Shown: positions 10,400-45,130 of the stretch, in pieces
Layout of the letters: the number at the start of each line of letters is the position of its first letter
How positions within the stretch are numbered: position 1 is the first letter of the stretch
Assembly (NCBI RefSeq): GCF_000143415.4
Contig: NW_003314271.1
Location: 2,278,499-2,342,498 of the forward strand
Direction: 5' to 3'
Length of the DNA stretch: 64,000 bases
From: Selaginella moellendorffii
Lineage: Eukaryota; Plantae; Lycopodiophyta
Made by a program: the position numbers and the translations under genes
The notes under the pieces: model-generated
Databases searched by the model: none
What the model saw: the letters and a program-made list of their open reading frames with translations, nothing else
Told to the model about the DNA's origin: nothing

Positions 10400-12350
10400 T
10401 CGCATTATACCAAGGGATATTAGAAATCTGAAGACTTGGTGTGCTTGGTTGCTTATAGTGAAGGATAGAGGCAGATCACTAGAAGATGGCTAAGGCAAAT
10501 TAGAAAGGAACAAAAGTAAAGATTAAACTATCTGTGCAGATGTAACCTTTAGTCAAACAAGAAGTAGTGAATGAAAAATCCTTATATGAGAAGGACTCCA
10601 ATAGTTGTTCAAGGCTTGATTAGACGCTCTAAAAGGACAATCTAAAGACCCTCATATACAAGTTAATGCATTACAAGAAATAAAAGAAAAAATAAAAGAT
10701 TGTAGATATAAGTAATGTAGAAGGCATGGACTTTTTGATGAGTACTAAGGTATAACTAAATAGGGTTGAGTAAAGTGAGGTGAAGTCTATCCTATAAGCA
10801 ATTCTTAAGTACAAACCAAAGCCTCTATTGGTTTTTAAGGGAGTGAATGACTATAATGTGGTGGAAATATTTATTCTATGATATAGAGGATTAGTTTTAA
10901 GTGTTATGATTATTAAACTCACAAAAAATCTCATATGCAAAACTATACTTAAAGGATAATGTTAAATTTTCGTGAACAATGACAAAGGCTAATGAAAAAC
11001 CAATAACTACCTGGGAAGTGATGAAGACAAAAATTCAAATAATCTATATTCCCCCAAATGTTATTTTGCATTTGAAGGATGAGTTGAGCAGAGTAAAGCA
11101 AACAGAAACCATTTATATATGAATGTGATTATGGCTAAAAGGATCTTTTTCATAAATATAGGTGATATAAATAAAGGAAGCATTAGATGTGGTTACCAAG
11201 ATGCATTTTAATAACAATCAGCAAAAACAAACTCAACTAGGTCTAGGTCTATATTTAACAAGGGATTCAGACCAAAAGAAATATATAAAAAAGGGAAATT
11301 CAAAAACAATTTCTTTAAAAATGAGTTTGTGAAGTTTTGGAAAGGCCAAAAAATATATAGGTGAAGTCCAAACAAAGGTATGTAATCCAATCTTTATCTT
11401 AAAGTTATTCATTACATAAGCAACTTTGGTAGAGAGTTACTTATGACATTTACTAGCCCTCCAAAGGAAGCTTAGAGGTAGCTCTATTAAGATCTTTATT
11501 GATATAAATGCTTTAAAAAATTTTATGGTTGCACACAATCTAACAAGCTAAATTAACAATGCAATAACTAGGATAATTAAGGACTATAGAGTTTGTTTAA
11601 AGTAGCCAAAGCACCAATGAAGTACTTTGATAAGAGCTGAAGTAAGGATATAGAAAGTGGACATGAATTTTACTATTTTAAACATAGTGTGATTTGATAT
11701 AATCTTTGAGATGGATTAGTTCAATTATTTATAATAGCATTGCATGAATAAAGTAGAAACCTAATGGTATTGATGAATACACTTGGAGAATGATCTATGG
11801 TGAAGGCCTAAGATCTATAAAGAGGGTGAAGTAAGTCTAAAGATTCCTACTTGAACTTAGTGCCTACTAAAAAATAGTTTACTAAGAGAACTAAGGTAGC
11901 ATTTTTGTGCTTACTCTTTATGAAACGATAAAAAGATGGGAATAAAAAAAATACCCTTAATGATCCAACAAGTATTAGATCAATTTTGAGATACAATACT
12001 AAAGAAATTGTTGGCGGGGTTACCCCCTACTTAATTAATAGAATATAAGATTGAGTTAGTTGAGTGATTCATCCCCCTTATCAATTGAATGAAAAGGAAC
12101 TCAAAGAGTTTAAATACTAACTTAAGGAGTTGATTGATGAACAATTTGCCATATGAAACTTTAGTGTTATTTATTTTAAAAAAACAATGGCTTTATGTGT
12201 ATATGCATAGATGACTAGTTGTTCAACAAGTATACAAAGAAGAATAAATACCCTTTATCAATGATTAAAGACTTGTTTGATAGGTTGGAAAAAGTAAAAT
12301 ACTTCTTACAAATCCCTTTATCAATTGAATAAAAAGGAAGTCAAGGAGCT
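10400..12350 (+). mobile_element. Highly degraded Ty3/gypsy gag-pol remnant
   Basis: RT-start peptides EYKIELVE..PYQLNEKELKE and NKYTKKNKYPLSMIKDLFDRLEKVKYF; many stops; AT-rich. Confidence 0.75.
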
Positions 12351-12354
12351 TAAA

Positions 12355-13065
12355 TGCATCCATAACCCATGAGATAAAGGTGATTAGACATAACTTTAGT
12401 ATAATAAGTTAATATATCAGTGGTACCTTTGAGTGTTTGTCATAGGATTGAACATGTGACACTTATGCTCCACGTGTTTAATCCTATAACAAACACCCAA
12501 AAGTACCATTGATATATTAGCCTGTTATATTAAGGATATATTTAATCACCTTTGTCTCGTAAGTCATGAATGACCCAATAGATGCATTTCATTCATAACC
12601 TTCATAAGTCTTATTCCCGACTTGAGGGATATATTAGTATTGTGAATGGCATTTATGCCATTTGGCCTTTGCACTTGGTTTAAGTGTTCCACATATTCGA
12701 TCATATAACAAACACCCAAAGGTACCACTAATATATTAACCTATTATGCTAAAGCTATATTTAATCACCTTTATCTTGTGGGTTATGGATGACCCAATAG
12801 ATGCTATTCACTCACAACCTCCATAAGTCTCATTCCCGACTTAGAGGACATATTAATATCATGAATGGCATCTATGCCACTCAGCATTTGCACTTGGTCT
12901 GAGTGCTCCAAGTGTTCAATCTTATGATAGACACCTAAAGGTACTACTAATATATCAGCCTATTATATTAAGGTTATGTTTAATCACCATTGTGTTATAA
13001 GTAGTCTAAAACCACCCATACTATAGTTTCATCTCCCAAAGATTAAGTCATCCATCCATGAGTGG
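12355..13065. repeat. About 220-bp tandem repeats (2-3 copies) plus an adjacent inverted copy forming a foldback; homologous in reverse to 62700-62950
   Basis: Recurring blocks aaacacccaaa(a/g)gtacca and gacccaatagatgc; 12355-12460 is the reverse complement of 12470-12572. Confidence 0.8.
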
Positions 13066-17551: not shown

Positions 17552-17622
17552 GCACTGCTGGTCTAGTGGTAGAATAGTACCCTGCCACGGTACAGACCCG
17601 GGTTCGATTCCCGGGCAGTGCA
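17552..17622 (+). tRNA. tRNA-Gly (GCC)
   Basis: GCACTGC...GCAGTGC-A acceptor stem, anticodon loop CT-GCC-AC, GGTTCGATTCC T-arm; TTTT terminator just downstream. Confidence 0.97.
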
Positions 17623-25855: not shown

Positions 25856-25955
25856 NNNNNNNNNNNNNNNNNNNNNNNNNNNNNNNNNNNNNNNNNNNNN
25901 NNNNNNNNNNNNNNNNNNNNNNNNNNNNNNNNNNNNNNNNNNNNNNNNNNNNNNN
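25856..25955. other. Assembly gap (100 N)
   Basis: Run of N. Confidence 1.
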
Positions 25956-25994
25956 CTCTCCGGACCAAGAGTAAGAGAATACACAGATTTTCTA

Positions 25995-27420
25995 CTACGT
26001 TCTCTTCCAGAGTCTTTGGAGCACTCGCATCTGCGACCTCTGGCTGGAGATTTGCTGCGAGAGATCCTCGATGGGGCGGACGTGGGCGATCTGGAACTCG
26101 CTCTCCAGGACCCGCTTGTCCAGGCGCTGGAACTCGCCGCTCACGATCCGGTCCTCCAGACCGTAAGAGGTGATGACGATGAGAGAGCCGCCGGGCGCCA
26201 GGCACGAGGCCGCCTGGGGTATGGCGATCTTGAGCGTGTTGATCTCGTCGTTCACGGCGATTCTCAGGGCCTGGAACGTTGGCAGCGCGGGATGCTCGTC
26301 CTCGAATCTCGGTGGCTTGGATCCAAGGTTTTGTTTCCTGCGATCTATAGAGAAGAAGAAATGGAAGAGCTTCGCAAAGTGAAGAAGAAGAAATGGAGGA
26401 GCTTGATCTTACCGATGAAGTTGACGAGCTGGAGCGTGGTTTTGAAGGGCCCTTTCTTGAGGCGGGTCTCGGCGATGGAGTGAGAGAGCTCTTGCCAGTG
26501 TTGCTCCTCGCCGTAGTCCCGGAGTAGTCGTCCCAGCTCGCGCTCGTTCCACGAGTTGAGAATGATCTCGGCTGTCATCCGGGAGCGTCGATCGAATCGC
26601 ATGTCCAGAGGGCCGTCCATGGTGTGGCTAAAGCCTCTCTCGGGAGTGTTAAGCTGGAAAAAAGAAAGCTTGCAAAGATGGTGGCATGGTTTTCTTTATT
26701 CTTTCCACTAGCAAGAAGAGATTATGATGCAAAAGCGAAAACCAAGAATTCAAGAGCAAAATCACTTCAAATTCATCAGGAAGAAAAACGCAAGAACTCG
26801 GAAAAAGAGTCTAAGAACCAGAACAACGTAGAAGAAAAACAAACAAATCAGCCAAGAAGAAAGTGGAGACAATGGCGCATTTTAGAGCAAGAAAGGAGGA
26901 GCAAACCAGATTCATCACAAAATCCAACCATGAAACTCAAGAAGAAGAACGGTTTCCATGCTATGCATGCCATACCTGCATTGCGGAGAGACCCAACACC
27001 ATCAAGATCCCGTCCACCCCTCGCTGGAGCAAGCCCGGATCGATCTGGTTGAGCTGGAGCTTGAGACACTTAAAGTTGACACTGGCAAAGTGGAGGCGGA
27101 GGTGGGCATTCCCCGCGGCGGCGGCTTCCAACTTGGGTCTGGCCAGCAACACCGCGTCGGGGTCTAGATCCAATCCCACAGCTTGCCGGAGCTCGGGATG
27201 GGTCCGTATGATCTGTGGAGAAAGAAAGAGAGCGATGTTTCTTTCGATCAAAAGAGAATGGAGCCATTACCTCGAACGCGTGAGCTCCGTTTCCCAGCGT
27301 GCAATCCACAAACGTTTCCAGGCGATTCGGCTTTAAGTGTTGGAGCACCGGATTGATCATCACTGGCGAGTAAATCGCTGCGAGGTTCCTGTACCATCGC
27401 TTGATCATTGTCAAGGGCAT
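25995..27420 (-). CDS. RsmH/MraW-family small-subunit rRNA m4C methyltransferase paralogue with divergent motifs
   Basis: Spliced: YSPV...FVDCTLGNGAHA|...GILMVLGLSAMQ|...ERGFS..DGPLDMRFD...YGEE...|HPALPTFQALRIAVNDE...ITSYGLEDRIV; the frame appears intact. Confidence 0.88.
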
Positions 27421-27661: not shown

Positions 27662-29190
27662 TCACCAATCCTCGCCGAAGTATTTCTTCCTCATGTCGTC
27701 GATGATGGTGCGTGGCCGTCCTTCGCCATAAGTTCCACCCGCGTACTTGGTCGCTCCAGGCAGCGGCTTGGGAGGATTGTTTGGATCCATGTTGGGATAG
27801 TTTCCATTAGCGTCGCGGTACCAAGGATTCGGAACAGTCGGATGTGGATTCCCCCTGGGCAAGTAAACCAAGAGCGATGAGTGAAAGAAAGAAAAAGAAA
27901 AGAGAAAAAGCTGCACCTGCGTCCTCCTCCAGAGTAAGATGGTGGCGGAGGAGATGAAGCGTTTGGATTCGGCCAAGTCTTTCCAGCTCGGGGATTCGTG
28001 TTGAAGTTACCACCGCTACCGCCGAATGGAGGGCTCGACGAGTTGTTGCTTGCACCGGCTTGATTCCCATACGGTGGCATGTTTGTGTTCACGGCCCCGC
28101 CAGCATAAGGATTGCCTCCACTGTTGTTGAGAGAACCATACGGAGGAATGCCGCTGCTATTGCTGCTGTTGTTGGTGTTGCTGGAAGAACCAAAGGGAGG
28201 GATGGAGCTGCTATTGTTGTTGTTGATGTTGCTGGAAGAACCATTGGGAGGGATGGAGCTGCTACTGTTGTTGTTGTTCATGCTGTTGGAAGAACCGAAG
28301 GGAGGGATTGAGCTGCTACTGTTGTTAAAGTTGCTGGAAGATCCACCAAAGGATCCACTGTTGTTGCTCGGAGGAGATCCATACGGAGGAACCGAGGTGG
28401 TGGAGTTGCTTGATCCACCGTATGGAGGCATTGATCCGCTGTTGTTGCTCGGAGAAGATCCATAGGGAGGGGTGGAGTTGCCTGATCCACCATAGGGAGG
28501 GATTGATCCGCTACTGTTGCTTGGAAAAGGAACCGAGGTGGTGGAGTTGCTTGATCGAGGAACATTCCCGGCTCCACCGCCATAAGGACCTCCGTATGAA
28601 GGAGGAGTCGAGCTAGAGCCCCCGTTACCGTATGGAGGAATCGAGCTTGATCCTCCTCCCATGCCGTAGCCACTAGAAGGAGATCCGCCGCCACTGTATG
28701 GAGGAGCCGAGCTAGAACCTCCGCCACCGTATGGAGGAGCTGAGCTAACGCCGTAGCCACCGCCACCGCCACCTCCACCAGAAGGAGGAGATCCTCCGCC
28801 ACCATATGGTGGAGCCGCGCTAGAGCCTCCGCCAACGCCGTAGCTACCGCCACCTCCACCAGAAGGAGGAGAGCCTCCGCCACCGTATGGTGGCGCCGCG
28901 CTTCCTCCACCAGGAGTCGAGCCACCACCGCCGCCAACGCCATATCCTCCAGCACTGTAGCCACCGTTACCTCCACCGCCGCCCTGTGGGGGAGGGCTCA
29001 CGCCATAGCCGCCCCCAACCCCATAGCCACCGCCGCCTCCGCCAGGCACAGAACCATTACCTCCATCGCTGTTGAAAGTGGAATTGTGATGAACGAGCAC
29101 CAATGCCGATGGATTGGCGATCTTGGAAGCCGCCGCGCTACCGCCACAGAGCTTCCCAGCGCCCAAGACGATCAGCCGCCTCGCCGCCAT
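27662..29190 (-). CDS. Gly/Ser/Pro/Tyr/Asn-rich low-complexity protein (GRP-A), about 488 aa, mitochondrial-like presequence, 2 exons
   Basis: ATG 29190 (MAARRLIVLGAGKL...); long open (S/I)PPYGG repeat exon; intron 27916-27855 with a strong pyrimidine tract; last exon ends RTIIDDMRKKYFGEDW*. Confidence 0.8.
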
Positions 29191-29270
29191 CGCTCGCTCG
29201 CTGCTGGCCAAAAACCCTACACCCTATACCCTAAACCTCAAACTCTTGCAAGCTTGGACGAGGCTTTCTT

Positions 29271-30605
29271 TCATCGGCATAGCCGCTGGATCACTCGCAT
29301 TTTGGCGCTCCTACACCGGGAGTTTTTCTCGATCTCCGCGGCGTCGGCCGTGATCGGGCTCGTGGTGAGCAGCATGAACGCCAAGTCCACCTTGTCGAAC
29401 ACCAGCGACAGCTCCTTGAACTGGTACTTGACGATGCGATCCTCGAGGCTGTGGAAAGAAATCACCGCCAGGCGACCACCGGGAGCCAGGCAGCTGCTCG
29501 CTTGTCCGATCGCGGACCTCAGTGACTTGAGCTCGTCGTTCACGGCGATTCTTAGCGCTTGGAACGTCCGAGCTGCCGGGTGCCTGGCTCTCTTGAATCT
29601 CCCTGCCGGTAGGAGAGAAGTAAGATATGAGTTCCACGAGTGGTGTGTGTAAAGCCTTACCTGAAGTGAATCTTCCTCCAACAACGCTGGCGAGATCTTT
29701 CGTTGTTTTGATCCCGCCGTTGAGCCGCGCGTCCACGATCCGGCTCGCCAGGAACTTCCACCGCATCTCCTCGCCATACTCTCGCAAGATGCGGCCAATC
29801 TCAGCGGCGGACCAGTTGTTGCAAATGGCTTCCGCGGTGAGCCCAAGAACATCCTGCAAGCAAGTTCCCGTGAGATCTCTATCACGATGAAGAAATAGAC
29901 TTACACTCGAATCCATTCTCATGTCCAGAGGTCCATCCAAGTAGTAGCTAAAGCCTCGCTCGGGAGCGTCAACCTGGAAAAGGAAGTGAAAACTAGAAAG
30001 ATTGGCATTCACGGCTTACCTGCATTGACGAAAGTCCCAGGTCCAAAAGAATCCCATCGAAGCCCCGCTCCAAGAGCTCAGGATTTCGTTCTTTGAGATC
30101 CTTCTTCATGTTCTTAAAATTGGCATGGAAAAGATCCACCTTCGCCATGCTACCTGAGAGATCGCTTAATCTTTGTCTCGCCAGCTTGAGCGCGCAGGGA
30201 TCAACGTCCATTCCCACGAACGTCTCCAGCTCTGGATGCGCTTGGATAATCTTTGCAAGGATGGAGTGTAATTCACTACCATTTCTCTATTGACAATCGA
30301 GTTGTTACCTCGAAAGCATGGCCTCCAGCTCCCACAGTGCAATCCAAGAAGGTTTTGACGCTTCTTCCTTCGAAATGCTCCAGGAATTGCCTCACCAGGA
30401 CGGGCGTGTGCGGCAATCTCTTCTTCTCCCCAGATTGAGGAGTGAAATCCTCCTCGACCTCGGACTCCAAGCTCGCAGCAGCGGCGGCAAGGCTCCTGAA
30501 TCCCCTCCGCTGCAAAATCGAGGCGCTCGCGACCGCTAGCAATCCAATCCGGCAAACCCTAGCGCTTCCAACCGTTGGAGACACGAAGGGAGAACAATGC
30601 AGCAT
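29271..30605 (-). CDS. rsmH: RsmH/MraW small-subunit rRNA m4C methyltransferase, canonical, with organellar transit peptide
   Basis: HTPV, DCTVGAGGHA, DLGLSSMQ, DGPLDMRMD, HPAARTFQALRIAVNDEL, ISFHSLEDRIVK and RSAKMR motifs are all present. Confidence 0.93.
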
Positions 30606-30801: not shown

Positions 30802-31559
30802 ATGTGGACTCTAATGTGGGGGCTTTCGATCGTCGCATCGGCGCTGGCGCTGGCGATAGCGCTCTCCAATCCCGCGGCAGCATTCGCGGGATCTAGAGCG
30901 CAAAACTCCGAATCGGTAAGCGTTTTTTCTTGAAGTAGCAATCCCTTTCCTCTCGATCTCTTGTTCTAAGCCCTGGCCGATATTTCGCTCTGGATCTTCC
31001 TCTCTTTCTCGATCTCTTCTCTCTCGGTTGTCTGTCTGGATATCTTTCGATCGATATTTCGGTCTCTCTTCTCCACTTCTTGGACAATCCTTTCGAAATT
31101 CCTCATCGTCTCGGTGTGTTCCAGCTCGGGAACTGTGTCTACACGATCTACGTGCGCACCGGCAGCATCTTCAAGGGCGGATCCGACGCCAACATGAGCG
31201 TGGAGCTCATCGACACCTACAACAACAGCCTGACCATCGACAACATCGAGACATGGGGCGGATTGATGCCGAGCGGCTGGAACTACTTCGAGCGCGGCAA
31301 TCTAGACGTGTTTAGCGGCCGCGGCTCCTGCCTGAGCACCACCCCTTGCAAGCTCGTCCTCACCTCGGATGGATCCGGCAGCCACCACGGCTGGTACGTC
31401 AACTACGCCGAGGTGAGCATCACGGGCCCGCATCTCGGCTGCTCCCAGCGCCTCTTCACCATCGAGCAGTGGCTCGCCACGGACACCTCTCCGTACGAGC
31501 TCTCCGCCACCGTCGATAAGTGCCAGGGCAACGGCGATCCAAGCATCCAGCAAGCCTAG
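30802..31559 (+). CDS. Secreted PLAT/LH2-domain protein (PLAT1-like), 2 exons
   Basis: Signal-peptide exon 30802-30915; exon 2 from 31125: CVYTIYVRTGSIFKGGSD...YFERGNLDVFSGRG...GWYVNY...QWLATDTSPYEL. Confidence 0.9.
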
Positions 31560-33300: not shown

Positions 33301-36300
33301 ATGGCGAGCGTCCTTGGCAGCATTGCCTCCGCGTCGCCAGCGCCATCGTCGGCGGCAGCGTCCAAGCTCGGGAGCGCCGGCGTCTTCAGCAAGACTGTGA
33401 GTTTCCCGCTGCTAGGGCCGCCAATCGTAATCCTCCGGCATTCTTCCTCCGCGGCCCCTGCCAAGATCGTTTGCCTGGGCAATGGCGCCGGTAGCAAGCC
33501 CCTCTTGGCTAGCTTGTCCGGGTTTACTGTCACCAGCGACAGTCCATCATTCTCGGCAGGGAATGCGAGCGCGAGCGAGGAGCTCGCTATTGCGAGCTTG
33601 GGCATCGACAGCAGGATTGTGGACGCCCTTGCCAAGAGGGGCATTGTGAATTTGTTTCCTATCCAGGTATGTGAGATCTAATTCTCTACGTCGTTAAGTT
33701 TCATTGTTTCGTTCCAGAGAGCTGTCTTTCAACCGGCAATGCAAGGACTCGATCTCATCGCTCGTGCCAAGACAGGAACTGGCAAGACGCTGGCCTTTGG
33801 GATTCCAATCCTGGATAACATATCGAGGGAAAAGAGTAGTATGCAATTCAGGTGAGCCTGACATCGTACTACACAATGCTTGATTTTGTTTTTCTTTGAA
33901 TCCAGACCAGCGGGAACTCCACGAGCAATCATTCTGGCACCAACTAGGGAGCTCGCGAAACAAGTTGAGAACGAGCTTGTGCTCGCAGCTCCACACTTAT
34001 CTGTGGTTTGCATCTATGGTGGTGTTAGTATCGAAGGCCAACGAAGGCAACTAGCATCCAGTGTTGAAGTGGTGGTGGGAACTCCCGGCCGAGTCATCGA
34101 CATGCTTGAGAGGGGCGACTTGAGACTGAACGAAGTAAAGTTTGCGATCCTGGATGAAGCGGATCAGATGCTTGCTGTTGGTTTTGCCGAGGAGGTCGAG
34201 AGAATCATGCAAAAGTTGCCGCTTCAGCGTCACACCATGCTTTTCTCCGCGACAATGCCGAGCTGGATAAGGAACTTAACAAGCAAGTATCTTAAGAATC
34301 CAACAATGATAGACCTGGTAAGTGTATCATTTGACTTGTTCGTTTTCTGACACCGAAGAACAGGTCGGTGAAAATGAGGATAAAGTTGCTGAAGGAATCA
34401 AGCTCTATGCAGTTTCTACAAATGACCTCGCCAAAAACAAACTTCTGGCCGATCTTCTCACGGTTTGTCGACTTTAATGACTGGGACTTGTATAAATAAT
34501 ATTTACTTACAGGTCTATGCGAAAGGAGGCAAAGCCATAGTATTCACGAAGACGAAGAGAGATACGGACGATGTTGCTGCTGTGATGAGCCGTTCCATTG
34601 GTTGTGAAGCCTTGCATGGGGATATTTCTCAGTACCAAAGAGAGAAGACCCTGAGTGGGTTCCGTGACGGGAGATTCAACGTTCTAGTCGCAACGGATGT
34701 TGCAGCTCGGGGGCTTGACATTCCAAATGTGGATCTCGTAAGTGAACTTTGTCTCTGCGAGGCCTTGTTTTAACAAGTTATTACTTTAGATTGTGCATTA
34801 CGAGGTTCCCGGAGATTCGGAAACTTTCGTTCATCGATCCGGAAGAACAGGCCGAGCGGGCAAGAAGGGGACCTGTATACTTATGTATACTCTTAATCAA
34901 AAGAGGGTCCTACGCACGATTGAAAGCGAAGTTGGCTGCAAATTTGAAGCTATAGGCCCGCCTGCGGCTGAGGATGTACTTGCCAGTTCTTCTGATCATG
35001 CGTCGGAGTCGATCAAAAGCGTGCACCCGGATCTCGCAAAGCTCTTTCTGCCTGCTGCGCAAAAACTACTGGAAGAGCAGGGCGTTACCGCTCTTGCAGC
35101 AGCTATGGCCCATGTTAGCGGTGTTACTCAACTCCCTCCGAAACGATCGCTCTTGACATACGAGGAGGTAATTAATCTTGTTCTTCTCATCGTGGAACTA
35201 ACGGTGTTCGCTGCAGGGATACATGACTTTGCAGCTGACCGGTGGAAATTTGATTGACTCAAGTGCGGTCTCGTCAGCTGTAATGCAACTTAGCTCCAAA
35301 GCAGGAATGAGCATGGGGAGAGTTACAATGCTTTCGAGTTCGACGGTATGTTTCTACCTTTCTGCATGTTTTTTCTGACCGCGTGAACAGGCCACCGGAG
35401 GGGTGTTCGATCTTCCAGAAGATCTTGCCAAGGAGATTCTTGCACTTCAAAATGTTGGAAGCAATGTTCTCACTGCCGTAAAAGTTGTAAGTACATATTT
35501 ATGTTTCTTGCTGTTTGTTCCTGACAAGAGGTTTGGCAGCTTCCCGATTTACAAGAAGACTACTTCCAGTCATCATTCAGTCGAGGAAGGAGCTTCGGTG
35601 GAGGATTTAGGAGTGGCGGATCCTCGTACGGCGGCGGTTCATCTTATGGCAACAGGGGTGGCTCGTCCTTTGGAGGCTCTTCATATGGAGGAAGTCGCAC
35701 TGGTTCCGGTTATGGTTCCTCCTCATACAACAGTGGAGGTGGTTATGGTAGAAGCGAAGGCTCGAGCTATGGGGGGTCATCCTATAACAGTGGATCCTCG
35801 TATGGCAACAGGTCAGGAAGCTATAGCTCTCCAAGCTATGGTGGAAACAACGGTTCCACTTTTGGTAACTCTTCAAACTACGGTGGATCTGGATCGTGGT
35901 CCAACTCCAACAGCAGGGACGCTGGCTACGGTTCCAACAGCAGGGATGCTGGCTACGCCACTGGCTCTTCCACTGGCTTTGGTGGAAATGCTGGTTCCTC
36001 CACAGGCCACGGCGGGACTGGCTACGGTGGAACCTCCGGTTCATCCACTGGATACAATGGAGCTGGCTTTGGTGCAAGTTCTGGTTCCTCCACTGGCTAT
36101 GGTGGAACGTCTTCATCTACTGGATATGGTGGAACGTCTCCATCCACTGGATACGGTGGAACGTCTTCTAGTGGTTTCGGAGGGAACTCGTCGACAGGAT
36201 TTGGAGGAAATTCGTCGAGTGGCTTTGGAGAAACATCATTTGGTGGAGCTCGAGGCTACAATGCCAACCCGACGACTCCCAACGCAGGGACTGACTATGG

Positions 36301-36856
36301 CTGGAGGAAAGGTGCCGGGAGCTCGGGAGGATCAACCGGTGCCACAACTCCTTCATACGGAGGAGGATATCCTCCTCCTTTTTCAACCGGAGGAGGATAT
36401 CCTCCTCCATCTCAACCTGGCTATGGTGCGTCGGCTGGGAACACTGGCTATGGAACTTCCGGCAACTACGGTTATGGCAATTCTCCTTCGGCTACTGGGA
36501 CTACCTACGGCTATGGCAACTCTGCCTCCACCAACAATGCTAGTGGCGGCTACGGTGGAAATCCCGGCAATGGGTATGGTTCAAGCACATCGAACACAGG
36601 AACAGGATTTTCGTCTGGGGGTGGTGGCTATGGAGGCTCTCAAAGCTCGTATGGATCCAGTCAAGCCCCTTCCTCGTATGGCTATGGTGGCAACCCGTCC
36701 CAAGGTGGCGGCTATGGCTCCAGCGGCTATGGAGCGGCTTCTCAAAACTCTCCCGGGTATGGCCGCGATTATAACGCGCGTGACCAGAATTCTTCTCGTG
36801 GCTATGAAGCTGGAAACTCGACTCCAAACGATCAAGGTGATCGTCAAACGAGCTGA
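33301..36856 (+). CDS. DEAD-box RNA helicase, RH3-like (plastid type, GUCT-like region), with a 438-aa Gly/Ser/Tyr-rich last exon
   Basis: Transit peptide; [29 protein letters not shown] and [10 protein letters not shown] motifs; GYMTLQL and VFDLPE; last exon 35540-36856 ([22 protein letters not shown]...DRQTS*). Confidence 0.92.
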
Positions 36857-38246
36857 AAAAATGAAGACTATTTGTGTTAATTAATAAGTAAGATTAATTA
36901 ACATGAGATTATCGTGGCAGGCGTCTGAGGCGACGAATTCGGCGGCCTCTCGTACACTTTTGCTGCTTCATCCAGGGAATGAGCTGAGTTGTCTTATAGA
37001 GAGGATGCTGTGGAATGCTCGTTTCCGAGACGCATTGCGCACTCCACGTGAGACAAAGCACCAAGAGCTCGCTTCCCCAGAGTTCACAACCTAACTTATT
37101 GCTGTTGCTAGTTGTTCCAACACTCGGTCTCACCTTTGTTATCAGATCGCTATTCCCTTTGTGAAACCAGTAACTGGCAGATTTCAAAAGTAAGCAGAAA
37201 TGTACTTCAGCTTCACCTCCTCTCTTCAATCTGCTCTCTGATGAAATAGTGGAACATTTCGAAGCGTTTATTCCTTTCATGGTGTACTTGATTCATAATC
37301 AACTGTAGGCATGCTGTGTTGTTGTAAACGTTCAGCAATTTTCCACATTGAAGCTACTCATCAGGATGGTCTATAGTTATGACGCTCAAGATTCATTTTC
37401 CTCTACATATAGCATAACATTTTTTATTTAGTAGCAAATTGAGATTTCCAATATCTAGTTGGGCTTTGTGTACAGAGGCATCTAGGCATGTTTTATGAAG
37501 TGGCTTCAATCTCATTCCACCTCTCTCAGCAAGCATCAGCTTTTGGCATGAATAATCTGTTAACATCAATAATCTGCCACCTTTTCTTCTATATATATCG
37601 CTAACTGATTATGGGAGTTAAAGATACTTTACTGCAATGGTTCTCAAGATAGAACCAGTTTGACACTCTCTAGCTTCCTTCATTTTTTAAGCTCTTGTCA
37701 TTTATTCATTTTTCCATTTTCTCGTAGTCAGATTCTAGTTTGACCCTATAGTTTTTTCCTGGTTTTTCTATGTGTTTTCAAATTTCACACCTTATTCCCA
37801 TTGTTTCTCTATTATCTCCATTTTCATCATCCATCATTTATTTTTTGTATGTGCTAGACTTGGATTCTTTTCCAGCTATTAGTTGCTTGTTGGAGCATCA
37901 GTATAATTCTGGGCATATTCCTGGATATGTTATTGGGCATTTCCAGTTGATAAGCCAAGGCCAGTGCCACTGGCCAAGATTTTGGGCCGTATGTCATAGC
38001 TTGAGGCATTCCACTCAAAGTCTATATGCAATGGATGGAGTGCCTTGAGTCTGCTGCTTAGAGGAAGGAGGGTTGATCCGACAAGGGAACTGTGTTGACG
38101 AGCAGGGATGTTGTGAAACAAGTCCCTACACCCACGATTAGAACAACAAACGTTAGTAAACCAACTAATCACTGATTTGTAGAATGGATATGCAGCTGGC
38201 ATGAAGAACACAATTATTGTACATGTGATCAAAATTTGAATATTCT

Positions 38247-40900
38247 GTCGGGGGAGGATAGCCCCTGCAATTAGTTAGCTTAGTGTAGAAAGAACTGCTT
38301 GCTCAACCTCGCAGGACGTGGATAGCATCCAGCTGCCAACTGTGCCTAGGGATCAAGATCAAAGAGCCGAGCTTTGTGTGTATAGAAAAGTGGATTTCAG
38401 TCTAGGGGTGTGTGATGTAGCCAATAGGGAGGTGTAAGAGACCAATAACATATAGAAGGGATGTGAGGTGGCAGAGGTAGGTTATTTTACTTCTTAAGAA
38501 CCGAGAGGACTGGAGTTGCAAAAGAACACAAGCTCAATTCCTTCAAGTGTATGAGGAAAGGGTGATCTTTTCTTTTCTATAGGGGATCCTGATCATGGTT
38601 CTCAGGTAGATACAGCCATGGCATTTTTGGTTCTCTCTCGCAAGAGTAAGAAGCCAGTGTCAAACCGACAGATCTTCAGATGAAGAAGCGGTGGAGATTC
38701 TGGTCATGTCCTTTGAAGATCGATTCAATAAGTTGATGGATATGAAAGTCCTAGGAGCTTTGGAGACAGCACATGTGGAACCTCTTGGAGGTCCAACTCA
38801 AGTAAGAGGAGATGGAAATGCATTGAGAGGGAGGTCAGGAAGATTTGGCAACACACATCAGATCCAAATTTGGGGGTGTTTTCCAATGGGCAAGGGCAAG
38901 AGTCCAGGATGCTGCAGAGGATTGGTAGTTGCTACAAAGGGCCAGCCTTTGTTTGTGTCTGTGGACCCAGCTGCCAACGTCCCAACATTCCCATTTCCCC
39001 TGTCAGCTTTCACCTCTACTTCGGGGGTGAATTCTAGTTCACCACCTTACGTGACTGCTGTGCCAGTGTACAGTGTGGCAACGTTTATTCCCTGGCATTT
39101 CAGCACTGGGGGGATGCTGTCGCCAACTTTCTTGTGGCCTCCATCATGGCCCTAGGGAAGCACTCCGTGCTTCTTCAGGACTTGCGGTGGATTGCTGCGG
39201 GGGAGCCCAGAGCTGGATCATTGGCTCCACAAGGACAGGTTCCTATTAACTCATTATGCGGGGGAGTATGATCGGATGGTGTTACAAGAGTGGACTTGTG
39301 GTTTTGACGGCTAATTCACCATCATGGAAGTTCCAAAGCGAAAGAGAGTTCCTTTTGCATCGATATACTTAAAGGGGTTAGCATCCAACTGGTACTACGC
39401 TCTTGAACAGTACAAGGTGGCTCCCTCATGGGAAGAATTCAAAAGGCTGCTCGTTTGTGTTAATAGCAGTGGCGTATTTACCCTTCAACGATACATCTTG
39501 CGGTCCAATCGTTACAAGAGTTCAATGAAACATGGTTGAAAACAAGATTCGGCGATCATGGAGTTCCGGAGGTTGCGCCCGCCCGCATGAGCTCTGATGG
39601 AGGCTTGGTTGACATTGTGGAATGATCCTCTATGCCAAGGACGGAACCAGTGGACCAACAAGCCGTTGTTGGTGTCATCATCATGGACTTCATCAACGTT
39701 TATTTCTTGTCCACTAGTGCATTCTACAGTTGAAGAAGTGTGTACAAAACGTCCAGTTAAAGAGAAGGTGGTGCTAATACATTTATGAAGACGGCACCTT
39801 GGCTCCTTGCTCCGCAGAGCAACTGGACACCCAGAGAGATTTCTTTATCCTGGAGGCCAAATCACCATAGTATGAGTGCCGAAGATCAAGTAAAAGATGG
39901 CTTCGATCATATCCATTGCCTTGAATGTGTTTGTTGGAAAAGCTCATCCACAGTACCTCATGTTCATGTTGGTCAATTTTGGAGCATCATATATGTTTAT
40001 CAACAACGTTGGCTCCAGAAGCTGAAGCTCACTACATCTTTGCTGCCAAGGCCACTAGTTGTGGAGGTTACTGTTCGTGGGACTTTATTGTCAGAGGCAG
40101 AAGTCCGATGCAACATACAGGTAGGAGGATATCAGATGGAGGGGACGTTCCATGTCCTTGAGATGGGGGCCGTCAATATGGTGTTTGGAGTTGACATTCT
40201 CCAGACTCTAGGAAACATCGTTGTTAACTTTGGAATAAAGTGGATGGAATTTTCTGTCCAAGGGAAAGACATATACCGGGCTGGATGTGCAACCTTTTCA
40301 TCAGTTTCAGCAAGTTTCGGCAGCTCAATGCTCGCGGTTAGTTGCTCAAGGTGGTGACCCTAGGAGTTCTTGAGGAGCAGCGACTAATTCAGCTTGCAAA
40401 GACAGCTTTGCCAAAGGAGCGAAGCCCTGGGAAGAAAGCCAGGGAGAAGAAATCAGTGAAGAAAGCAGACCCTGGAGGACTGGAGGAGAAAAATGACAGC
40501 AAAGGCAGGAGGAAAGCAATGAAGCAAGCTGCCGCTTCGTCCATAGACTCAGATGATGCTGAAGTTTCTGGTGAGGAGGGCAGAATATCCACAGAAGTGG
40601 AAGATGCTTTGGCCGAAATTCCACTTCCAAACGACGTAAAGGTACTTGCAAGTTTTTATCCTCATGTATTTCGCAAGCAGATTACTGCTTGAGAGGCTAG
40701 TGAGAAAACTGGGGTGTATCACCATATTTGTTTGGAATCAGGAGCTCCTCCTACCACCCGAGCTTTTATTCGTCCAGATCAGGAGGAACGCCAGCGTGTC
40801 GACGAGATGGTGGGCGAGCTATTAGCGGATGGAATGGTGGAATTGAGCACGAGTTCTGGTTCTCAAGAAGTAAACAAAACCTACACATTCCTGCTATATA
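38247..40900 (+). mobile_element. Degenerate Ty3/gypsy element (gag, protease, start of RT)
   Basis: YLKGLASNWY...PSWEEFK (gag); MLVNFGASYMFI (decayed DSGA protease site); VFGVDILQTLG; YHHICLESGAPP...ELLADGMVELSTS (RT start); frameshifts. Confidence 0.75.
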
Positions 40901-41292
40901 ATCGATCCCTCTAGGAGGAGTTTGTGCTGTCTCTTACTTCACCAAGGACATCCCAGAGGAGTTAGGGACCGAAGTACAGTATGATCTGTTCGAGCTCCAG
41001 GAGTTTATTCTCAAGGTAATGTATTTTTCTATTTCATGCCTTCACACTAAGCTTCACAAGCGTTTATGTAGGCTGACAGTGCCATGGAATGAAGTTGCAA
41101 CTTAATGGCATCACTTGAAATATTGTACATCCAGTTTCGGCATTTGACTTCTAATCATGGGATTGTCCCCTCATGAAAATAAAAGATATAACAGCCATTC
41201 AGCAAGTATAATTAGCGCTTTCTTTTAAATGGTTTTGCGCACTCACTGCTATTGACAAAAGGTTAACAAGTTAATAACAGTCCTTAATTAAA

Positions 41293-41365
41293 CGACTCCA
41301 CTGGGGATCGAACCCAGAATCTCTGGTTCCGTAGACCAGCGCCTTATCCGTTGGGCCATGGAGTC
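41293..41365 (-). tRNA. tRNA-Arg (ACG)
   Basis: Reverse complement GACTCCATGGCCCAACGGATAAGGCGCTGGTCT-ACG-GAACCAGAGATTCTGGGTTCGATCCCCAGTGGAGTCG folds as a cloverleaf. Confidence 0.96.
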
Positions 41366-41463
41366 ACATGTTGGTAACCTCCTAGAGTTTTTCCTACTAG
41401 GAGGTTTAAATTTTTACCATAAGGGTTTTTGGTGGAAGATATTTTTTTCTAAAACCCTAGGCT

Positions 41464-44400
41464 ATGGCGAGCCAGGTCCTGTTGGGAGCGCCAAGCTTGG
41501 CGCCGTCGGCCGCATTCCCTGCCTCCCGGCCGGGGAAGAGCCCTGCGGCATTGCGCAAGAGCGTGCTAGGGTCTCCAGCTCCGGCGCCATCGCCAGCACC
41601 AGTTCGTCTCTTCGCGAATCCGAGGTATGGAACCAGATGCTGCTCCTACAGCGCCGATAGCAGCGCCTCGAGCGGTGGTGGGGGCTTTGGAGCTGGTTCT
41701 AGCCCCGGCTATGGCGGCGGCGTGAGCAACAACAACAACATCTGGATTAATCCCAATGCCACCGAGGAGGACAAGAAGAACTTCGTCTACAGCACGGGGA
41801 GCTCTTCGATCGACAAAAGGATTGGGAAGACATGGGCGAATCCAAGCGCTGGTGGCGTAGATAGCCCCGGTGGGGGCTATGGTAGCTCTGTGGCTCCTCC
41901 TGGCGGTGGCGCTGATTATTCTGGCCAGAAAGGGGCTGCTTCTAGTGGAGAAGCTGATGCGAATGCTCTATCCGGTGGAGGATCTACTGGAAGCGGTGCT
42001 GCTTCTGGTGGACTTGGTGGTGCTCCTGCTACTACTTTCGATGCGGCTGCTTCTCCGGCTACTCCATCGACCACTGGTTATACTGGAGGCGCTGGTGCTC
42101 CTGCGGGTGGCTATGGTGTGAGCTCGTCGACGGGCTATGGCGGTGGCTATGGCGCGAGTGGAGCTTCTTCTACTGGCTATGGAGCTGGAACGTCCTCGAC
42201 TGGTTATGGTGCTGGAACGACGCCCTCGACTGGATATGGTGCTGGAACGACGCCCTCGACGGGGTATGGTGCTGGAACGTCCTCGACTGGCTATGGTGCG
42301 GGAACGACGCCCTCGACGGGGTATGGTGCTGGAACGTCCTCGACTGGCTATGGTGCTGGAACGTCCTCGACTGGTTATGGTGCTGGAACGACGCCCTCGA
42401 CTGGATATGGTACTGGAACGTCCTCGACTACCGGAGGCTATAGTGGAAACCCATCAACAGGCTATAGCTCGCCTGGGTCGACCGGATACGGAACTTCTTC
42501 CGCGTCCACCGGCTATGGAAGCTTTGGCGGAACGTCCCCGGCATCGACTGGCTATGGGACTGGCACAACCCCGAGCTCCACGACCGGTTATGGATCGTCG
42601 ACTGGTTTTGGAGACGCGTCCACTGGCTACGGTGGAGGAAACTCATCCACCTCGACTGGCTATGGTCAAAACTCTTCGACGGGCTTTGGTGATGGTCAAA
42701 ACTCTTCGGGAAGTTCTACCAGTTCTGGCACGGGTTACGGTGGAGCTGGTTCCTCGACTGGATATGGAAGCTCGGGAAATTCTTGGGCTGGAAATGCTTC
42801 AACCGGATATGGTGGAAGCTCGTCAGCAGGGAGTACCTTCGGTGGGGGCTACGGTGGGAACTCCTCGACTGGAAGCGGATTTGGCGGCTCCACAAATTTT
42901 GGAGAAAGTTCTTCGACTGGAAGCGGCTTTGGTGGCTCCACTGGTTTCGGTGGGACTTCTTCGGGTGGCTTTGGTGACAATTCTTCAACTGGAAGTGGCT
43001 TTGGCGGTGGTTTCGGTGGAAACTCTTCGACGGGCTTTGGTGGGAGCTCAACCGGCTATGGTAGCTCCAACGGCTTTGGCGGGAGCTCCTTTGGTGGCGG
43101 AAGCTCATTCGGCAGGAGCTCGCCTGGCTTCACGCCCAGATACCACAGCAACCCGACGACGCCCAACGCAAGCACTGACTTTGGGTGGAGGAAGGGGATG
43201 AGCACCGCTCCAACGCCGCCACCCCCGCCGCCATCCACAGAGCCGGACAGCTCCACAACGCCATTCTCGGCTACAAGTTTCCTCGGGGGAAATCCTGGAG
43301 CTTCCTCGCCCGGATACGGGACCACGCCTAGCTCTTCGTATCCGGGAGGCTCCACAGGAGGCTCGTTTGGCTCCACAGCGACGGGAGGCTACCAAGGAAA
43401 CTCTACGGGCTTTGGGTCCTCGACGAGTGGCGGCTACCAAACGAGCAGCTCTCCAGACTTTGGATCCTCGACAACGCCGTCGTGGAACAGCGCACCATCT
43501 TCGAGTCCGAGCACGGGGTGGAACAGTGCACCGTCTTCGAACCCAAGCACGGCGTGGAACAGTGCACCATCTTCAAGTCCGAGCACGGGGTGGAACAGTG
43601 CACCTTCTTCGAGCCCAAGCACGGCGTGGAACAGTGCACCATCTTCCAGCCCGAGCACGGAGTGGAACAGCGCACCATCTTCGAGCCCGAGCACGGGATA
43701 TGGGAGTGAGAGCGCTGCTTCAACTAGCTCGCAGGCGGCAGCCCCTGGAGCGGCTCCAAGTTTTGATTCAGGTATATAGTCTTTGAGTATGGTTTGGTTT
43801 CTAAGATTGAATACAATGTTGTTGACGCTGGTAATCGCAGCAGAGAGTTCTGGATCTAGTGCGGGACTGTCAGTTTCCGCGAGTGGCTCTGGTGTTGAAG
43901 CGGCAGCTTCAGTAGGATCTAGTAGTTCGTCAGCTGGCGAGCCGACGCTGGTAGCATCATCGTCAACTTCGCCAGCTTTAACGGGATCATCACCATCAAC
44001 ACCGGCTTCTGGAGAATCCACACTAGCGTCGTCGTTGTCTGGATCGTCTACTCCAATTGCTTCGACTGGATCAAGCACGCCAGGCCAAACTTCGAGCTTG
44101 TCCCCTCAGACTGTATCAAGCTCGGCTCTACCTGGCACTGGAACTGGATATGGCACGAGCTACTTGGGTGGAGACGTCGGCACGCCTGCGAGTTCTTATG
44201 GCTTTGGCGCTCCACCACCACCACCAAGCTCTCAGACGCCACCAAATCCTTCTCCATCGCCATCGCCATCGCCAGCAAATCCTTACGCGTCTTCCTCTTC
44301 TCCTCCCCCGTCGTCGCAATCTCCAGCAACCAGGAGCTCTTTTGCTGGTTCATCCAGAGGAGGAGGAGCTGCTGCTGGAAACAGGATCAACAAGGGACCA

Positions 44401-44793
44401 ATGCCCGAGTTCAAGCTTCCAGACGGCACGAACAAGTGGACGTCGGTGGATGAGATGAGGCGGCACTACTTCCCAAACTGCGATAACGAGCCGCCGCCAC
44501 GCAGGACATACAAGACCCCCGACCCCAGCGCGGGTGGATTCGTCATCCCCGACGGCTCCAGGAAGTGGAACTCGATCGACGAGATGCGGCGGCACTACTT
44601 CCCAAACGAGGATTTCTCCACGCCGCCAAAGAGAACGTACAAGGCCCCGGATCCAAAGGCTGGCGGCTTTGTTCTTCCCGACGGCTCTCGCAAGTGGAAC
44701 TCGATTGACGAGATGAGGAGGCACTACTTCCCGGACGAGGACTTCTCCAAGCCTCCCAAGCCCTTTGGTTCCACGGGAAAGAGTGACAAGTGA
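41464..44793 (+). CDS. Large Gly/Ser/Thr/Tyr-rich low-complexity protein (GRP-B), about 1086 aa, plastid-like transit peptide, three C-terminal 40-aa repeats, 2 exons
   Basis: Exon 1 41464-43771, intron 43772-43840 (NAGNAG acceptor), exon 2 in frame to TGA 44793; N-terminus Ser/Ala/Pro/Arg-rich without acidic residues. Confidence 0.82.
43483..43698 (+). repeat. Coding 36-bp tandem repeat, 6 copies (WNSAPSSxPSTx)
   Basis: tggaacag(c/t)gcacc... recurring every 36 bp. Confidence 0.95.
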
Positions 44794-45130
44794 TCGACAA
44801 AGCTTGCCATTGCCACCTTTTCGTCTGAAAACTATTCTATTTATCCAAACCTTTATGGAGGTAAAGCCCTATTTGATACATTGGATTAGATTATATTCAA
44901 ACAAATATTTTAATATGAATATCTATGGCGCAAGCGTGAACCTCATGGCAGCCATTCAATGCACGATCCAAGTGGTAAGTCTCGGCCTTCGAAGAATTCG
45001 ACTCCGTTAGGTTTCTTGTGATTGATCATCGCTTGCGCGGATGATCCGTCACATTCTTCCACAAGTTAGAATGTGAGCCTTGTGCTCGTCGGGGGGCCCA
45101 ATTCACCATCTCCAATTCCGAGTTTACGCT

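Follow-up and report, generated by a model that had tools for sequence, protein, structure and literature searches.

A 16-residue sequence island common to the low-complexity tail of a DEAD-box RNA helicase and to a neighbouring protein in Selaginella moellendorffii

Low-complexity sequences are known both as the [G/S]Y[G/S] prion-like domains of FUS/hnRNP-type proteins and as the disordered tails with which DEAD-box helicases tune RNA-protein condensates. The present work concerns a stretch of 64,000 nucleotides from the lycophyte Selaginella moellendorffii (NCBI RefSeq assembly GCF_000143415.4, contig NW_003314271.1, positions 2,278,499 to 2,342,498 of the forward strand), referred to below as the window, in which the Gly/Ser/Tyr-rich tail of a DEAD-box RNA helicase and the product of a nearby gene, GRP-B, carry near-identical copies of the 16-residue motif NPTTPNA.TD[YF]GWRKG. 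The GUCT helicases consist of a nuclear and an organellar sub-clade, the latter of which includes RH3, and the RH3 proteins of land plants typically possess a Zf_CCHC in addition to the GUCT (PMC8648619). In Arabidopsis, RH3 functions in group II intron splicing and in biogenesis of the 50S ribosome, and CLPC1 traps are enriched for it (PMC8648619, PMC8889267).

The two copies of the motif in the window are as follows.

36266-36313, + strand: first motif copy, residues 856-871 of the helicase, read from the translation and the spliced frame
43150-43197, + strand: second motif copy, NPTTPNASTDFGWRKG, residues 563-578 of GRP-B, read from the translation

These copies are identical in 14/16 amino acids and 41/48 nucleotides (42/48 in the blastn alignment, which involves a one-base shift), and a six-frame pattern search of the window recovers exactly these two. 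The best 16-residue window between the two tails has a BLOSUM62 score of 87, as compared with 52.4±3.4 (maximum 62) when both tails were shuffled 100 times, and the 14 identities within it exceed the number seen in any of 300 shuffles (at most 12). Low-complexity composition therefore does not explain the match. In its composition the motif is also foreign to its surroundings, the sole Lys of the helicase tail and one of its two Trp residues being located within it.

The seven nucleotide differences between the copies are ACT/ACG, GGG/AGC (which accounts for two of them), TAT/TTT, GGC/GGG, AAA/AAG, and GGT/GGG; four of them are clearly synonymous, and both of the amino acid replacements (G/S and Y/F) are conservative. 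With only one mismatch in the first 21 nucleotides of the motif, the conserved unit could be thought to be a nucleic-acid element, for example a small-RNA target site present in both mRNAs. However, the synonymous changes at third positions and the conservative replacements fit a constraint on the peptide, the copies are less alike in the other reading frames (10/16 in the one that was read) and Rfam gives no match at the motif; an explanation of this kind is hardly credible.

The likeness between the two genes also includes the repeats upstream of the motif, where the following features are located.

35987-36265, + strand: helicase block of STG[YF]GG and 10-residue repeats, 5' of the motif and containing the shared 12-mer
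36173-36208, + strand: helicase copy of a shared exact 12-mer, 19 residues 5' of the motif
43009-43044, + strand: GRP-B copy of the shared exact 12-mer, 35 residues 5' of the motif

An earlier sequence-only reading of this DNA had reported the two translations, their 14/16 identity and the presence of STGYG and 10-residue repeats upstream of both copies; the translations and identity proved exact upon retranslation and the repeats are found in both genes. The order of the elements (STGYG repeats, shared 12-mer, motif) is the same in the helicase and GRP-B, and the copies of the 12-mer, which are identical in amino acid sequence, share 29/36 nucleotides with every difference being synonymous. 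Within the motif, the same codon is used at nine of the 13 degenerate positions where the amino acid is identical, as compared with 4.55 expected based upon each gene's own codon usage (Poisson-binomial P=0.0097). Additionally, synonymous codons were permuted within the helicase tail (n=200), a procedure that retains both the protein and its codon usage. The blastn score of the motif was 60.8 bits vs. 27.7±15.9 for the permuted sequences, and that of the upstream STGYG repeats, which form the best match outside the motif, was 64.4 bits vs. 40.2±6.0, with 0/200 permutations reaching the observed value in either case. In view of the codon identity, the permutation tests and the colinear islands, the two copies very probably share descent through a local DNA event, and the likeness of the motif is due to descent rather than convergence.

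The helicase gene, whose exons were read from transcript contigs, has the following structure.

33301-36856, + strand: DEAD-box helicase gene, nine exons, 1051 amino acids, from spliced transcript contigs of four runs from four studies
33301-33666, + strand: exon 1
33718-33851, + strand: exon 2
33906-34317, + strand: exon 3
34364-34462, + strand: exon 4
34513-34737, + strand: exon 5
34790-35167, + strand: exon 6
35217-35345, + strand: exon 7
35391-35486, + strand: exon 8
35540-36856, + strand: terminal exon 9, stop included, coding for the Gly/Ser/Tyr-rich tail of 438 amino acids

The eight introns (33667-35539) are tiny (45-54 nucleotides), all of them are of the GT..AG type and they are confirmed by transcripts. 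The sequence-only reading had made its case dependent upon exon 35540-36856 being spliced in frame onto the helicase, and this is borne out by the contigs of all four studies, in which the junction 35486|35540 is present and exon 9 is entered in phase 0; the spliced frame is free of stops over 1051 codons. Searches of the helicase against protein families and PDB were carried out with the exons one at a time, the joined translation serving for the frame check only. Individual exons matched the Pfam families DEAD (2e-30) and Helicase_C (5e-20), and in the spliced frame GKT is found at residue 144, DEAD at residue 250 and SAT at residue 281, with motif VI (HRxGRxGR) in exon 6. With these defining domains and motifs the protein belongs to the DEAD-box RNA helicases of superfamily 2. 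In PDB, exon 6 is most closely matched by Hera of Thermus (7e-18), including the Hera dimerisation region, and exon 8 alone gives a weak match to GUCT (positions 60-88 of 96, E=0.023, 15.3 bits vs. a cut-off of 27 bits); PDB matches of exons 7 and 8 were spurious and have been discarded. The N-terminal ~90 amino acids are Ser/Ala-rich, almost devoid of acidic residues and presequence-like. By its architecture the protein fits the organellar type of helicase, and the RH3-like label given to it previously is plausible.

The tail encoded by exon 9 is composed of 30% G, 23% S, and 10% Y, lacks Cys and matches no family in a Pfam scan; its G/S/Y-dominated composition and predicted disorder are those of prion-like [G/S]Y[G/S] sequences. 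In single-sequence AlphaFold2 predictions of 156 amino acids around each motif copy, the mean predicted local distance difference test (pLDDT) values were 40.6 and 46.7, and the models lacked secondary structure. Among the transcript sets the tail shows indel polymorphisms of 3, 6, and 18 nucleotides, all of them in frame (35717, 35791, 36361-36379), the longest of which lies 48 nucleotides 3' of the motif and removes one GGYPPP-type unit. Single-nucleotide polymorphisms (SNPs) in the tail comprise nine synonymous and 11 nonsynonymous changes over 1317 nucleotides, and those in the core five and one, respectively, over 1839 nucleotides. Based upon the in-frame indels and these SNP ratios, the tail is coding and translated and it is weakly constrained overall.

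The features of GRP-B, and of the related gene GRP-A that lies upstream of the helicase, are as follows.

41464-43771, + strand: GRP-B exon 1, from the open reading frame and its translation
43772-43840, + strand: predicted GRP-B intron, 69 nucleotides, GT..AG, in frame, whose removal eliminates the TAG at 43777-43779
43841-44793, + strand: predicted GRP-B exon 2, Ser/Pro-rich and with three PDG..KW.S.DEMRRHYFP repeats
41824-41844 and 44449-44730, + strand: GRP-B islands held in common with GRP-A (GKTW.NP and D[DE]MR[RK].YF)
36857-41463: spacer of 4.6 kb from the helicase to GRP-B, with the helicase 3' untranslated region, a gag relic and a tRNA gene, and no helicase relic
27662-29211, - strand: GRP-A, a Gly-rich orphan protein, with no copy of the 16-residue motif

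The open reading frame of 771 codons at 41464-43779 stops at the above TAG and the next one (43783-44793) shares its frame; read across the predicted intron, GRP-B would be a protein of 1087 amino acids. It would begin with a presequence-like Ser/Ala/Pro-rich N-terminus, followed by the GKTWANP island, the STGYG array and the 10-residue repeats; from the motif onwards there follow a poly-Pro run, seven copies of WNSAPSSSPST and the three PDG..KW.S.DEMRRHYFP repeats. The tandem WNSAPSSSPST units (43483-43698, + strand) constitute an array of Trp repeats in Ser/Pro-rich disorder that recalls GW/WG proteins. The only Pfam match for GRP-A and GRP-B, to DUF6890, is sub-threshold and probably due to chance. 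The sole database relative of the C-terminal repeats of GRP-B is the S. moellendorffii protein SELMODRAFT_419806, which is mis-modelled and lacks the motif. This annotated hypothetical protein has absorbed a rearranged, partly inverted copy (~88%) of the 3' part of GRP-B (window positions 43701-44865), located at an unrelated locus (positions 11390-12531 of the piece examined, in GL377609.1; GCA_000143415.2), and the copied fragment excludes the motif. The islands common to GRP-A and GRP-B suggest that these form an orphan family in which the ends are conserved and the low-complexity middles vary.

Two origins had been proposed for the common sequence, namely local exon shuffling, or descent of GRP-B from a helicase duplicate that had lost its catalytic core. 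In favour of the latter, the two genes are adjacent and on the same strand, and they have the tail vocabulary and the motif in common. However, when the eight core exons were compared by tblastn with the rest of the window, no core relic was detected near GRP-B (the best matches, with E of at least 0.1, were in unrelated places); no relic of the helicase presequence is present there either, and the two N-termini are dissimilar. Because there is no helicase relic beside GRP-B and its end motifs are common with GRP-A, a lost-core origin is disfavoured, and we consider it very unlikely. In the case of exon shuffling, a local duplication is supported by the DNA-level tests described above, but the shuffling of a whole exon is not, since the similarity to GRP-B is limited to a sub-block of exon 9, at residues ~150-260 of the 438-residue tail. 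These observations fit an event in which a low-complexity segment was transferred or duplicated from one neighbouring gene to the other, in either direction.

The suggestion that the motif is under selection at the protein level was examined by the Nei-Gojobori method, which counts 4.5 synonymous changes at 11 sites as compared with 2.5 nonsynonymous changes at 37 sites, corresponding to a synonymous divergence (dS) of 0.59, a nonsynonymous divergence (dN) of 0.07 and a dN/dS of 0.12. A binomial test yields P ~0.009-0.05 depending upon the path assumed for GGG/AGC, a result that derives from a small sample of seven changes and in this respect counts against the interpretation favoured below. 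The motif is also far better conserved than its flanks, as in-register 48-nucleotide blocks on either side are identical at 10-22/48 nucleotides vs. 41/48 for the motif, and the second result that the sequence-only reading had named as refuting its case (conservation no higher than in the flanks) is thus not what is seen. Between these two S. moellendorffii paralogues the island is conserved and the flanks are not; a functional short linear motif would in addition be conserved among orthologues and have a defined binding partner. The synonymous excess, the low dN/dS and the conservative replacements thus speak for the suggested selection, but there are only seven changes, the flanks cannot be aligned and slippage is possible, and the indication of purifying constraint on the protein is suggestive but thin.

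Our favoured interpretation is that the motif copies and the repeats just upstream represent one ancestral piece of DNA, which a local copying or exchange event brought into the low-complexity coding sequence of both the helicase and GRP-B, 7 kb apart. The surrounding repeats would later have been scrambled by slippage and indels, and the non-repetitive island of 16 residues would have been altered only synonymously or conservatively. The island may be a "sticker" or short linear element for docking, with its Trp, Arg/Lys, Asp, and aromatic residue set in a G/S/Y tail, and it could tie the two disordered proteins to a common partner or to one RNA-protein assembly. The plastid is the presumed location, as suggested by the presequence-like N-termini only. 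To this reading as a whole, in which the island is under protein-level constraint as a docking element for a common partner or assembly, we assign a probability of about 0.5.

The same observations may be accounted for by a neutral relic of the local duplication, in which the island is the sole non-repetitive stretch and has escaped slippage and unequal exchange, accumulating point substitutions slowly and having no function. Its flanks are tandem-like repeats that have lost register, and the upstream block of the helicase fits many GRP-B windows about equally well, both being repetitive. Because the flanks are repetitive and show indel polymorphism, including that of 18 nucleotides nearby, the motif is possibly just a slippage-proof stretch. 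The weak constraint on the tail (nine synonymous and 11 nonsynonymous SNPs) and its in-frame indels, one of them 48 nucleotides 3' of the motif, are in keeping with such a relic, as is the failure of searches elsewhere to yield relatives; further, the synonymous sites of the motif are unsaturated and the copy therefore need not be old. However, the synonymous excess is unexpected under pure neutrality and both replacements are conservative, and we regard a functionless relic as possible though somewhat unlikely. A short patch of gene conversion between the neighbours might also maintain the island, or have recently reset it, whatever the age of the tails. The two genes lie on the same strand, separated by 7 kb, with a common repeat vocabulary able to seed exchange, and the synonymous divergence of the island seems to be below the divergence of the in-register flanks. 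Yet seven differences in 48 nucleotides (dS ~0.6) imply that any conversion was not recent, and the similar identity of the 12-mer island (29/36 nucleotides) fits a single older event, which renders conversion decidedly unlikely.

Several observations weigh against the docking reading itself. Motif copy 1 is invariant across the transcript contigs of the four runs, and the lack of any variant within the motif in these four RNA data sets carries no weight, given that only ~0.7 was expected. The pLDDT values do not rise at the motif relative to its flanks in either copy, the only rise in the GRP-B segment being at the poly-Pro run. Pro-rich sequence is indeed present 3' of both copies, as had been described, but the alignment of these downstream parts of the helicase and GRP-B is no better than that of shuffles (z=1.2), and their homology is not demonstrable. 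The decay of the flanks may be due to repeat slippage rather than to neutral point change, the gene model and expression of GRP-B are putative, and the docking function and its partner are hypothetical. Lastly, no orthologue of the motif from other species was found in our searches, and a profile of the two copies recovered no true relatives among 1.84 billion representative proteins.

The three profile matches with E<1e-3 (chitin-binding-like repeats, a repeat protein with TDKGWRRG and a bacterial repeat protein with ADYGWPKG) are unrelated to the motif and were rejected. In word-indexed protein searches, residues 549-588 of GRP-B gave 14 candidates, none with E<=10, and residues 440-640 gave 8000 candidates, none with E<=1; in neither case was even the self-match recovered. 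These blank results are weakly informative, because the libraries do not themselves contain such tails, and it is a point of note for annotation that the helicase is a protein of 1051 amino acids with a 438-residue tail that is absent from those public libraries that were searched. At the DNA level, a degenerate pattern for PNA.TD[YF]GWRKG had no matches in metagenome contigs of the Joint Genome Institute (JGI), and a literature search for GWRKG returned no paper. Wide conservation of the motif among the annotated RH3 tails of plants would probably have come to light in this way, and on this weak indication the island is likely to be restricted to lycophytes or to Selaginella.

The remaining features of the window include the following.

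27070-27420 and 29311-30605, - strand: pieces of RsmH/MraW-type (Methyltransf_5) rRNA methyltransferase genes, flanking GRP-A and upstream of the helicase
31080-31559, + strand: open reading frame with a PLAT/ATS3 domain, upstream of the helicase
39324-39539, + strand: decayed retrotransposon gag relic between the helicase and GRP-B
41293-41365, - strand: tRNA gene (Rfam), ~100 nucleotides upstream of the GRP-B start codon and on the opposite strand to it
17552-17622, + strand: second tRNA gene (Rfam)

The Rfam scores of the two tRNA genes are 58.7 and 58.8 bits. A run of N at ~25900-26000 marks an assembly gap, and runs of X occur in translations of open reading frames on both strands. With the two RsmH-type genes nearby, one may imagine the island as an "address tag" specific to this lineage, which would draw the plastid helicase and a scaffold-like GRP-B into one RNA-protein condensate, for example in the assembly of plastid ribosomes or intron ribonucleoproteins. 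We consider this more specific proposal rather improbable; if true, it would be one of few cases of a scaffold and a client of a condensate having gained the same motif via local DNA exchange.

In comparison with AtRH3 and ZmRH3, which belong to the organellar sub-clade (II) of the GUCT helicases, the Selaginella helicase has a similar DEAD and Helicase_C core, a Hera-like extension and a weak GUCT signal, and it resembles RH3 also in its presequence-like, Ser/Ala-rich N-terminus and its Gly-rich C-terminal tail. It differs from RH3 in that its tail, being devoid of Cys, has no zinc knuckle of the Zf_CCHC type and consists instead of 438 residues of G/S/Y repeats in which the 16-residue motif is carried. 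The composition of this tail, its predicted disorder and its attachment to a DEAD-box ATPase are features in common with systems of the FUS/hnRNP type. However, the setting in Selaginella is probably organellar, phase separation would be hypothetical here, and a segment of the tail is duplicated in a stand-alone neighbouring gene.

The W-motifs of GW182/AGO-hook proteins, as these are generally understood, likewise consist of Gly-flanked Trp residues in disordered sequence rich in G/S/T/N, and the sevenfold WNSAPSSSPST array of GRP-B is reminiscent of them. However, there is no sequence relationship, and both Selaginella proteins have the look of organelle-targeted ones, and an Argonaute is not to be expected in organelles. 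With two Trp in the helicase tail and presequence-like N-termini in both proteins, their membership among AGO-hook or GW-repeat proteins was rejected. A WRKY domain was similarly rejected, as only GWRKG is present, with no downstream Cys/His and no Pfam match.

If the island is functional, it would offer a compact handle (16 residues with one Trp) on the manner in which the disordered tails of organellar DEAD-box helicases find their partners, and it would bear on the way in which local duplication can give an enzyme tail and a stand-alone low-complexity protein a docking element in common. Should it be just a relic of duplication, it would provide a small example of non-repetitive islands outliving the turnover of repeats. 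In relation to the systems considered here, the finding is a modest one: DEAD-box helicases bearing prion-like tails are a known theme, of which this would be a variant restricted to one lineage.

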